This document shows positions 2,644-59,373 of a stretch of 64,000 bases of DNA, in pieces (positions within the stretch are counted from its first letter, which is position 1; every line of letters begins with the position of its first letter). A model generated the notes under the pieces. The model saw only the letters and a list, made by a program, of their open reading frames with translations. It was not told the origin of the DNA and ran no database searches. The stretch lies in sequence record NC_006883.2; one strand, written 5' to 3'. Both the position numbers and the translations under genes were made by a program.

Positions 2644-2740
2644 AAAGGAATCGAAAGATCGTACCCCTACGTAGATGTAAAACAGAATCCCATGTCGGGG
2701 ATTCTATCATCCGCAGGGGTTTTTTAGTCCCGTGCGAGAT
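2644..2740 (+). ncRNA. Structured 5' leader RNA (family not recognised)
   Basis: GAAA-tetraloop hairpin 2650-2659 plus nested stems 2663-2671/2712-2720, 2674-2677/2708-2711, 2684-2691/2698-2705, then a T-run. Confidence 0.55.
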
Positions 2741-2756
2741 AATAATAAACAAAAAA

Positions 2757-3146
2757 ATGTCTATTAAATCAACAATCGCAGCTCTTGCTGCATCACCTTT
2801 CCTATTCGCTGGAGCCGCTTTTGCTGGTCCTTACGTGAATGTAGAGGCAAACGCATCATATCCTGATGGAGACTACACAGGTGCTACTACAGACGTTGCT
2901 GTAGGTTTCGATGGATCTACTTCTGAAGGTAAGATCGCATACTACATCCAAGGTGGTCCTGCTTTCGTTCACAGTGAGTCTGCTGACGATACTGAGACTG
3001 AGTTCTCTGGTAAGGCAGGTGCTTCTCTAGCAGTTAACGAAGATCTTTCAGTTTATGCTGAGATCTCTGGTATCTCTGATGAAGATTCAACTGGCGATGA
3101 CATCGTAAACTTCGGTGGTAAAATCGGTGCTAAGTTCGTATTCTAA
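2757..3146 (+). CDS. Small outer-membrane beta-barrel-like protein
   Basis: Signal peptide AFA/GPYV, alternating beta pattern, C-terminal Phe (KFVF). Confidence 0.8.
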   Translation: MSIKSTIAALAASPFLFAGAAFAGPYVNVEANASYPDGDYTGATTDVAVGFDGSTSEGKIAYYIQGGPAFVHSESADDTETEFSGKAGASLAVNEDLSVYAEISGISDEDSTGDDIVNFGGKIGAKFVF

Positions 3147-3170
3147 ATATTAGGAGTTCGAGATGGATCA

Positions 3171-3199
3171 AGACCTCTGCTTTGCAGGGGTCTTTTTTT
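3171..3199 (+). terminator. Rho-independent terminator
   Basis: agacctctgc-ttt-gcaggggtct followed by T-run. Confidence 0.85.
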
Positions 3200-3282
3200 A
3201 TGTGTTGAAGATTACACAGAGATTAAGAAATATAACACAAATATAAAGAAAATGGTAAAAAAATGGTGTCATAGTGATACAG

Positions 3283-3348
3283 TATAAACGGATACTAAAC
3301 TTCCCTTAACCTTCTCTTAGTTTACATATCAATTAAATTTGATATAAT
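3283..3348 (+). promoter_or_regulatory. Pho box array and -10 element
   Basis: 8-mers at 11-bp period: tataaacg/actaaact/cttaacct/cttagttt (3283, 3294, 3305, 3316); TATAAT 3343-3348; upstream of pstS unit. Confidence 0.7.
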
Positions 3349-3380
3349 GTATAGATATTACAGTTTCTTTAAAAAAACTA

Positions 3381-3737
3381 ATGAAAGCATTCGCAGTTGT
3401 CCTGCTCGCACTTGGTGTATCAGCACCAGCATTTGCAGGCCCGTATGTATCCACCAAGTCCGAATTTAAAGGTAATGAGGATGGATACAGTAAAGCAGCA
3501 AACCAAGCACGAATCGGAAACACCTTCGATATTGGATTGGGTAAATCCTATATTGAAGCAGGTGGTGGTATTGTATCTCCTGATAGTGGAGATAGTGAAG
3601 GATTCAAGGTTGCTGAAGTTGGAACCAAGTTTAAGGTAACAGACTCACTCTCTGCTAAAGCAAAGTTTGAGCACAAGTGGTCTCCCGATGATGAGAGAGA
3701 CTGGAAATTTGAAGTAGCAACAAAGTACAAATTCTAA
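3381..3737 (+). CDS. Small outer-membrane beta-barrel-like protein, co-transcribed with pstS
   Basis: Signal peptide AFA/GPYV, C-terminal KYKF; resembles 2757 gene. Confidence 0.8.
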   Translation: MKAFAVVLLALGVSAPAFAGPYVSTKSEFKGNEDGYSKAANQARIGNTFDIGLGKSYIEAGGGIVSPDSGDSEGFKVAEVGTKFKVTDSLSAKAKFEHKWSPDDERDWKFEVATKYKF

Positions 3738-25312: not shown

Positions 25313-25350
25313 TTATAACAGTCATAAAGGATGCTTATAATTGTTCGGTG

Positions 25351-25384
25351 TTGACATAATTGTAAAGATTTGTTATAATAAATA
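25351..25384 (+). promoter_or_regulatory. psbA promoter: TTGACA-17-TATAAT plus overlapping late TAAATA
   Basis: ttgaca 25351-25356, tataat 25374-25379, taaata 25379-25384. Confidence 0.85.
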
Positions 25385-25405
25385 CATCGGTGAGCATTTC
25401 CTCAC

Positions 25406-25472
25406 TTCCCTCTAACCGAGATCACGGGGGTTACATCTCTCATATCCACTAGTGAAGGGATTAGTGGAAATA
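25406..25472 (+). ncRNA. PhotoRC-II-like cis-regulatory RNA
   Basis: gagat/atctc stem, tccactagt/attagtgga stem, loop gaaggg can pair with upstream ccct; 5' of phage psbA. Confidence 0.7.
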
Positions 25473-25518
25473 AACGTATCGCTCTACCCTTTGAGCCCTA
25501 CTAAATTTAATTGTCCTC

Positions 25519-59024: not shown

Positions 59025-59156
59025 AACGAAATTCGACTTTTAATTCCAAAATATGCCGACAAAAAATTCGGCAATTTTTTTGCTCTGTAGGGTCGATGTA
59101 GTAAAAAGACATATTGACTTGACTAAATAATTAAAATGTGTTATTATTAACACAAT

Positions 59157-59203
59157 CGTTCAACCTGATACATTCAGGTCGCAAGTAAGCCGACTCGGAA
59201 CGG
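59157..59203 (+). ncRNA. Glutamine-II (Downstream-peptide) riboswitch-like aptamer 1
   Basis: cgttc/gaacg P1, acctga/tcaggt stem, cgcaagt core; upstream of a DUF4278-like ORF. Confidence 0.72.
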
Positions 59204-59205
59204 AT

Positions 59206-59373
59206 CGTTCATCTCATGGACATACTACTCGCTACTATTTTAACTTGTGAAGAGGCAAAGGGGATTATCACTAAGATATCACCTTCGACTCAATATAGAA
59301 CCGAATTGGTTCAAATGGTAAGAGGTAGCACTCAAGGATGTTTATGGGACGCAGAAGTTGACTAAAGGAACGG
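59206..59373 (+). ncRNA. Glutamine-II riboswitch-like aptamer 2 with a ~125-nt expanded loop
   Basis: cgttca-tctcat ... atggga-cgcagaagttgactaaaggaacgg. Confidence 0.62.
59216..59365 (+). CDS. 49-aa ORF nested inside aptamer 2
   Basis: MDILLATILTCEEAKGIITKISPSTQYRTELVQMVRGSTQGCLWDAEVD. Confidence 0.55.
   Translation: MDILLATILTCEEAKGIITKISPSTQYRTELVQMVRGSTQGCLWDAEVD

Follow-up and report, generated by a model that had tools for sequence, protein, structure and literature searches.

The 64,000 nt stretch analysed here (sequence record NC_006883.2; hereafter the window) is from Prochlorococcus phage P-SSM2 and was 100% identical to AY939844.2, window position 2757 corresponding to position 188757 of that record. 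A leader at 2641-2740 is located between PSSM2_245, a 2OG-Fe(II) oxygenase gene that ends at 2592, and PSSM2_246 (2757-3146), and all features described at this locus are on the + strand. PSSM2_246 encodes a 129-aa, signal-peptide-bearing beta-barrel protein of the Phage_OMP / DUF680 type (GenBank annotation, Pfam), which matched Pfam PF24653 (Phage_OMP) with an E value of 2.2e-41; this family, the 'cyanophage outer membrane protein-like beta barrel', was formerly known as DUF680/PhCOG173. The promoter that an initial annotation had placed ahead of a 129-aa outer membrane protein (OMP) gene was confirmed together with the identity of the ORF: a -35 box TTGACA (2601-2606) and a -10 box TAATAT (2625-2630), separated by an N18 spacer, gave 10 of 12 consensus matches in a consensus scan. 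The -10 box is overlapped by the T4-late-like TATAAATA (2628-2635), which by the standard of T4 would be a candidate late promoter, the composite promoter as a whole spanning 2601-2635 and transcription likely starting at about 2637-2641. The arrangement TTGACA...TA(A/T)TATAAATA is kept in homologous OMP leaders and in those psbA leaders that bear the P1 domain described below. We also noted that a sigma-70-like promoter with its -10 box overlapped by a T4-late-like (T/C)ATAAATA occurs in the window at both the OMP leader (2601-2635) and the psbA leader (25350-25385), and that this overlap is conserved across homologues of the two leaders; it could permit both early/middle and late transcription.

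The leader is joined to the start codon by an A-rich, unstructured linker (2741-2756) that was unpaired in all folds and in which sequence inspection revealed no Shine-Dalgarno sequence. PSSM2_246 is followed by a canonical intrinsic terminator identified by a terminator scan (3170-3201; 11-bp stem then U7), by the paralogue PSSM2_247 (3381-3737) and by pstS. PSSM2_247 has a near-consensus promoter of its own, TTTACA-N16-TATAAT, and a short leader (window 3321-3380), in which we found none of the elements P1, P2 or P3; a model of the OMP leader (R1) matched 2632-2759 only, with no second copy in the window. In a preprint citing Lin 2016 (bioRxiv 10.1101/2021.07.20.453049), g247 and pstS are the only P-SSM2 genes given as induced by phosphate limitation, and g246 is absent from that list.

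We are practically certain that positions 2641-2740 form a conserved structured 5′ leader of PSSM2_246. A 131-nt stretch folded at -37.8 kcal/mol compared with -21.5 +/- 3.3 kcal/mol in dinucleotide shuffles (z -4.97), none of 200 shuffles being as good. No Rfam 15 family matched the + strand of 2593-2756 at gathering thresholds or at E<=10, and eight homologous loci were likewise free of matches at E<=1, so that the novelty which, by the initial annotation, a known family would remove is left standing; elsewhere in the window the same scan returned PhotoRC-II at 25392-25481 and a glutamine aptamer at 59155-59206. The dissimilarity to the wcaG, PhotoRC-II and glutamine aptamers stated in the initial annotation is upheld by the Rfam models, although the front hairpin of the leader abuts PhotoRC-II in other phages. 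By blastn, the leader was found ahead of a DUF680 gene in 15 other cyanomyophages, including P-SSM7, P-SSM3, P-SSM4, P-HM1, P-HM2, P-TIM68, P-RSM6 and single-cell viral genomes, with an oxygenase, talC, glycosyltransferase or psbD-side ORF as the upstream gene. Protein-anchored IMG/VR scans contributed a further 240 loci, and in total approximately 180 distinct leader sequences were compared; these always stand before Phage_OMP genes, whichever gene lies upstream, and four elements were followed across them, namely the P1 domain, P2, P3 and a U-run. The literature searched on DUF680, PhCOG173, PhotoRC-II, cyanophage riboswitches and P-SSM2/P-HM2 expression yielded no account of this leader, which we regard as a previously undescribed candidate cis-regulatory RNA.

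The P1 domain (2641-2673), found only in Prochlorococcus-type phages, is a sensor-like irregular hairpin of approximately 33 nt with the consensus UAC-AAA-GG-ACU-CGA-loop-UCG-UAAC-CC-UGY-GUA. Its closing strands are seg1 on the 5′ side (UACAAAGG, 2641-2648) and seg2 on the 3′ side (CCCCUACGUA, 2664-2673), and it comprises an outer helix P0 (2641-2643:2671-2673), P1b (2646-2648:2666-2668) and the CGA/UCG helix P1c (2652-2654:2659-2661) with a terminal loop at 2655-2658. ViennaRNA predicted exactly this fold once seg3, a downstream segment, was blocked. Across 149 sequences the covariation score of P1 was 0.145 versus 0.058 when shuffled, a score reached by 0 of 500 shuffles: pair 7-41 occurs as UA (72), AU (22), CG (4) and GC (3), pair 10-39 as CG (123), GC (7) and UG (6), and pair 11-38 as AU (52) and GC (11), and the outer helix varies between UAC:GUA and UAG:CUA, with GUAAAGG:CCUUUGC as a further variant. 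Rows offset by one position (the GGCC-CGA variant) inflate some of the counts of changes on both sides, and we therefore regard the support for this helix as real but less firm than that for P2 and P3. P1c and one G-C pair of P1b are invariant, and the terminal loop ranges from 4 to 5 nt around the constant CGA/UCG. Invariant nucleotides (CGA/UCG, GG/CC) together with conserved internal loops, AA(U)/UAC(C), are what would be looked for in the sensor of a riboswitch. The GAAA-tetraloop hairpin proposed for this position can indeed be drawn as AUC-GAAA-GAU at 2650-2659, but the tetraloop is not conserved: it is possible in P-SSM2 and P-SSM3 and incompatible with many homologues that have 5-nt loops, the family register being CGA-(4-5 nt loop)-UCG. 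Two other readings of the domain were considered and dropped: a Shine-Dalgarno decoy in AAAGGA of seg1, which is not conserved (UAGGAC and CAGGCC variants), and an NtcA-like GTA-N8-TAG DNA site, which would lie downstream of the promoter and whose variation is of the RNA-pairing type.

The P2 hairpin (2684-2691:2698-2705; conserved loop AUGUCG at 2692-2697) has changes on both sides in 7 of 7 pairs, with 94.7% of cells pairing, and supplies the top mutual-information pairs of the leader alignment. In the P3 hairpin (2709-2719:2729-2740), seg3 (CAUCCGCAGGGG, 2708-2719) is the 5′ strand and seg4 (CCCGUGCG, 2729-2736) the 3′ strand, and the U-run lies within the loop. Its core (2712-2715:2733-2736) is supported by covariation among 97 leaders of Prochlorococcus and Synechococcus type, in which 97.6% of cells pair and compensatory changes affect five of the six pairs (C-G/U-A 48/49, C-G/U-A 64/28 and G-C/A-U 51/39). 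P3 is nearly invariant within Prochlorococcus-type phages, and the Synechococcus-type variants are UGCGG/CCGCA, UGUGG/CCACA, CGUAG/CUACG, CGUGG/CCACG and CAUGG/CCAUG. Both hairpins are present in both types of cyanomyophage, and they are older and more widespread than the other parts of the leader. In Synechococcus-type leaders the promoter stands directly before P2; P2 and P3 are kept, the loop reads GUAAnCAyU, and U-run, P1 domain and upstream complement are all absent. Since P2 and P3 are present in these phages without any terminator, they should serve some further function, for which stability, translation and factor binding are candidates. We also observed a Synechococcus-type subgroup of loci (L189, L204, L228, L229, L102 from S-RSM4, L249, L256, L257 and L259) with the P2 stem GCGAUUGAG...CUCAAUCC and a loop of ACCAA/ACAA type in place of the near-universal GUCG, so that the family can evidently do without a GUCG loop.

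A scan of alignment A1 for pseudoknots using mutual information/APC returned only P2, P3 and P0-flank pairs, and gave no support for pairing of the P2 loop GUCG with GAYA or with P1. The switch-like pairing originally put forward, UCGUAC (2659-2664) with GUGCGA (2732-2737), is complementary and present in all homologues, but in the conserved structures it is P0/P1 and P3 that compete with the outer stem; both strands barely vary and are already explained by P1c and P3, and the pairing is therefore neither supported nor excluded by the comparison.

The same RNA can also adopt a long terminator-like hairpin, PT (2663-2725), made up of 2663-2671:2712-2720, GAUG (2674-2677) with CAUC (2708-2711), the enclosed P2 and the U-run. 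This corresponds to the three-tier nested stem with a T-run of the initial annotation, all pairings of which were recovered in place, with U6 (2720-2725) directly 3′ of the stem. The basis of PT is the complementarity of CCCUGYG in seg2, the 3′ strand of P0/P1b, to CGCAGGG in seg3, the 5′ strand of P3, and its pairing of CCCCUACG with CGCAGGGG followed by U6 has the G+C-rich stem and U-tract of a terminator. PT is not a compact hairpin, being approximately 58 nt long with internal loops and an enclosed P2, and a simple terminator scan did not flag it. When Prochlorococcus-type leaders were cut at the U-run, PT was the minimum-energy fold in 81 of 82, with a mean energy of -25.0 kcal/mol versus -17.2 kcal/mol for the P1-domain state (approximately 7.7 kcal/mol better), and in homologues it is often extended by AA:UU to abut a run of U5-7; RNAalifold did not return PT, even from the alignment cut at the same point, but per-sequence folding did. 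Full-length leaders are bistable, PT being the minimum-energy fold in 44 and P3 in 35. PT and P3 are mutually exclusive because both use CGCAGGGG at 2712-2719, and PT also shares 2664-2671 with P0/P1, so that two covariation-supported helices, P0/P1 and P3, stand in the relation of anti-terminators to it. Covariation across homologues, one of the checks proposed with the initial annotation, thus supports P2, P3 and P0/P1, but for PT only wobble-tolerated changes were seen: 88.7% of cells pair, no real compensatory changes were found, and the variation is compatible with wobble pairing (U/C opposite G; C-to-U and A-to-G in seg3). No promoter-like sequence was seen between the U-run and the ATG, and transcripts from the promoter at 2601-2630 or from upstream genes must therefore cross the U-run.

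The distribution of these elements among homologues bears on whether PT matters. The U-run and the P1 domain are both present in 111 leaders and both absent in 61, with six apparent exceptions, two of which were pattern misses; this co-occurrence is confounded by relatedness, because it largely sets one phage clade against another. Leaders that have neither element nevertheless precede OMP proteins of the Prochlorococcus-phage type at six loci (L029, L047, L065, L070, L073 and L096). Where PT is possible, seg3 is nearly invariant (CGCAGG or CGCAAG in 106 of 113), its changes being transitions that pair with both partners, versus nine variants where PT is absent. The co-occurrence, the contrast with Synechococcus-type leaders and the frozen seg3 argue, at the level of sequence comparison, that PT may well be functional. 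As a separate observation, a motif UCCGAAUGCCUCAAUUACUCGCGCUAGGUC, often preceded by GAAGGACGCUUC, lies ahead of OMP leaders that have no P1 domain (L029:386-415; L047:343-372; L070:391-420; L073:392-420; L096:328-357; and L101:312-341 from S-SSM7); in L047 it is upstream of the promoter, and comparison of four of these loci (L029, L047, L070 and L073) with Rfam at E<=1 returned nothing.

The P1 domain also occurs apart from P2 and P3. A scan of IMG/VR with a P1-core pattern listed 120 matches, consisting of approximately 100 OMP leaders, 12 psbA leaders and a few chance matches in G+C-rich contigs, and the domain was found before three kinds of gene: Phage_OMP (approximately 100 loci), psbA (12 listed loci and P-HM2) and an ORF of 37-38 aa (3 loci). 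Before psbA it stands immediately 5′ of PhotoRC-II, in P-HM2 (L388:702-747; record 171601-171647) and, among the matches listed, in 12 IMG/VR contigs (L267, L281, L288, L304, L311, L321, L341, L347, L356, L367, L370 and L374). In these psbA leaders P1 follows a composite promoter of the OMP-leader type and a small covarying hairpin, and it ends where the Rfam PhotoRC-II model starts, its last ~10 nt overlapping the unpaired start of the model. There, seg2 (GUAACCCUGACUAC) is a nearly exact complement of hairpin 2 of PhotoRC-II (GUAGUGAGGGAUUAC), and seg1, together with the sequence flanking it on the 5′ side, is complementary to the region around the start codon (GUCUUACUAAUG); most P1-bearing psbA leaders are predicted to contain the two pairings in their minimum-energy folds. 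The annotated ORF PHM2_211 (135 nt) overlaps the psbA leader of P-HM2 and is probably not a gene. The conserved small ORF (MTTITK[NY]KHEIMWWMSRLT...) begins 5-8 nt downstream of a minimal P1 domain (L514:1497-1650; L517:11190-11340; L518:5190-5330) and was observed upstream of heme oxygenase in one complete phage genome; because its first residues resemble the N-terminus of psbA, this context may derive from a partial duplication of the 5′ end of psbA.

A covariance model of the P1 domain (R2) detected it in 10 of 10 Prochlorococcus-type phage genomes scanned, with two copies in P-HM2 (the leaders of the OMP gene PHM2_229 and of psbA) and two in each of two complete IMG/VR genomes, and found none in five Synechococcus phage genomes; the domain is also absent from the psbA leader of P-SSM2 itself. 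Matches of the P1 pattern in cellular genomes (596 Gb; at least 120, in unrelated taxa) were discounted as chance, none of the first 100 scoring with R2, and a set of 151 cyanobacterial genomes from one order, those listed being of 3.5-7.8 Mb and not picocyanobacteria, gave one weak match (E 0.002). A sensor-like domain of this kind, with two strands that take alternative partners in different downstream platforms, is what typically marks a riboswitch aptamer or the operator of a protein.

The reading that we favour, with a probability of roughly 0.55, is that the leader acts in cis as a factor-dependent transcription attenuator of PSSM2_246 with a four-segment layout, in which seg1:seg2 closes the P1 domain, seg3:seg4 forms P3, and seg2:seg3 can pair instead to give PT. 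In this model the weak P1 domain would form first in the nascent RNA, where a putative trans-acting factor (a metabolite, an ion or a protein) could stabilise it. If P1 were not stabilised, the emerging seg3 would displace seg1, PT would form, and RNA polymerase would stop at approximately 2722-2726; if P1 were held, polymerase would pass the U-run, seg4 would capture seg3 in P3, and the mRNA would be completed. The helices P2, P3 and P0/P1, their exclusive alternatives and the reuse of P1 are observed; that transcription ends here, which way the switch works and that a factor exists are our inferences. Ribosome-mediated control is unlikely, because no leader peptide ORF is visible in the leader of the window. 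The proposal of the initial annotation, a candidate riboswitch or attenuator, is strengthened by the mutually exclusive four-segment layout, the co-occurrence of P1 and U-run and the reuse of P1, but not by the alternative pairing or the tetraloop on which it had drawn, and the label 'riboswitch' is unproven.

Use of intrinsic termination by this phage is evident from canonical terminators such as that at 3170-3201, and this speaks for attenuation; that the gene is expressed speaks against it. In the supplement to PMC5082946, the P-HM2 homologue of PSSM2_246 is classed as a 'middle' gene, like psbA, and contigs from RNA libraries run through the leader, although as assembled sequences they cannot show transcript ends. 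One such contig breaks at 3156/3157, just before the PSSM2_246 terminator, with a mean depth of 208 before the break and 48 after it; the drop is weak evidence because these depths are whole-contig means, and the break is compatible with termination at 3170-3201. Two raw-read runs gave zero reads on the stretch, as these runs did not contain the phage.

A static structured 5′ UTR, in which P1, P2 and P3 would form together at all times and act in mRNA stability (as 5′ hairpins against RNase E/J), in membrane targeting or in the efficiency of translation, is a less likely account, to which we give real but minor weight. The U-run would then merely be the loop of P3, and the complementarity of seg2 to seg3 would have no function. 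Such a UTR fits the full-length minimum-energy fold of the window's own leader, which is exactly P0/P1+P2+P3, as well as the proximity of P1 to the predicted 5′ end in those contexts that were examined, the conservation of P2 and P3 in Synechococcus phages that have no terminator, and the want of compensatory change in PT. However, it leaves unexplained why a 7-9-bp G+C-rich complement of seg3 and a U-rich loop arose together with P1, why the freezing of seg3 is confined to the class capable of PT, and why P1 strands are complementary to downstream elements in psbA leaders. We think it quite unlikely that the element is instead a small RNA gene, a transcript of roughly 85 nt (~2637-2725) ended by PT with read-through into the OMP gene as a secondary matter: promoter, stable hairpin and U-run would make a complete small transcription unit, and the strongly conserved P2 loop GUCG could be a seed, but the element is invariably found immediately upstream of a Phage_OMP gene and co-oriented with it, nothing resembling a promoter separates the two, seg4, which lies 3′ of the U-run, equals seg3 in conservation and covaries with it, and Synechococcus-type versions have no terminator. 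Least probable, and very improbable in our view, is a mobile recombination or promoter cassette of promoter and first hairpin conserved through copying between loci, in the manner of the promoter-early-stem-loop cassettes found in T4-type phages; unrelated genes do stand behind one and the same combination of composite promoter and P1 domain, and in L047 a leader of Synechococcus type precedes an OMP protein that is close to the ones following Prochlorococcus-type leaders, but each genome has just 1-2 copies, the complementarities to downstream sequence differ with the context, and compensatory change at paired positions with variable loop lengths points to selection on RNA structure.

Beyond the attenuator itself, we offer as a tentative and rather doubtful extension that the P1 domain serves either as the aptamer in a new class of riboswitch or as an operator bound by a dedicated regulatory protein, and that it is restricted to T4-like cyanophages that infect Prochlorococcus. 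One signal in the infected cell might then co-ordinate psbA, through PhotoRC-II and the start-codon region, and Phage_OMP, through the terminator. The set of genes concerned (a membrane beta-barrel, D1 and a small membrane peptide) suggests no ligand candidate. Phages of this group reach very high abundance in the ocean, little is understood of the timing and tuning of their host-derived auxiliary genes, and to our knowledge they have none of the middle-mode regulators of T4. If the proposal is correct, a sensor-like hairpin common to the Phage_OMP/DUF680 gene and psbA would be a concrete handle on the regulation of auxiliary genes, a new orphan regulatory RNA whose ligand or protein could be sought, and the first mechanistic lead, and a testable one, for the orphan PhotoRC-II motif. 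P-SSM2/NATL and P-HM2/MED4, both available in culture, would allow a direct test of the prediction. A link of the OMP family to nutrient limitation has been made, and the gene was repeatedly lost in a related phage evolved on a Synechococcus host (PMC6224464).

Several structured RNAs invite comparison with the OMP leader. Among other candidate riboswitch motifs of cyanophages (Weinberg 2010, PMC2864571) are glutamine/glnA (RF01739), manA and wcaG. Like the OMP leader, these are structured leaders ahead of auxiliary genes in T4-like cyanophages, but there is no match in sequence or structure and the associated genes differ. PhotoRC-II (RF01717), the motif of psbA leaders in cyanophages and marine metagenomes, was reportedly put forward in 2010 as a candidate cis-regulatory element with no mechanism attached to it. 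It shares with the OMP leader the phages, the type of composite promoter and the 5′-leader position, and the P1 hairpin, which is not part of its Rfam model, is an accessory that the two have in common outside that model. Beyond P1 the two are distinct: the OMP leader has no PhotoRC-II score even at E<=10, its model R1 does not match the PhotoRC-II of the window at 25392-25481, and P2 and P3 are different hairpins, with an AUGUCG loop in P2 and a U-rich loop in P3 in place of the AACCgAGACCUA and ggAGGGU loops of PhotoRC-II, and with no psbA downstream.

Classical attenuators of the trp and pyrBI type have four segments with 1:2, 2:3 and 3:4 alternatives. The OMP leader has the same three alternatives, but in contrast to those systems it is 2:3 and not 3:4 that precedes the U-run, and there is no leader peptide ORF. 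In 'ON' transcriptional riboswitches, such as the pbuE/ydhL adenine riboswitch, the closing helix of the aptamer shares a strand with the terminator. Similarly, in the OMP leader the 3′ strand of the sensor-like hairpin doubles as the 5′ strand of the terminator-like stem, with a U-run after it; thermodynamics favour this stem in the nascent RNA, and the sensor is joined to different platforms in different genes. The putative sensor differs in being an irregular hairpin of ~33 nt and not a multi-helix junction, and the OMP leader has in addition a P3 hairpin that would capture the 3′ strand of the terminator after read-through.
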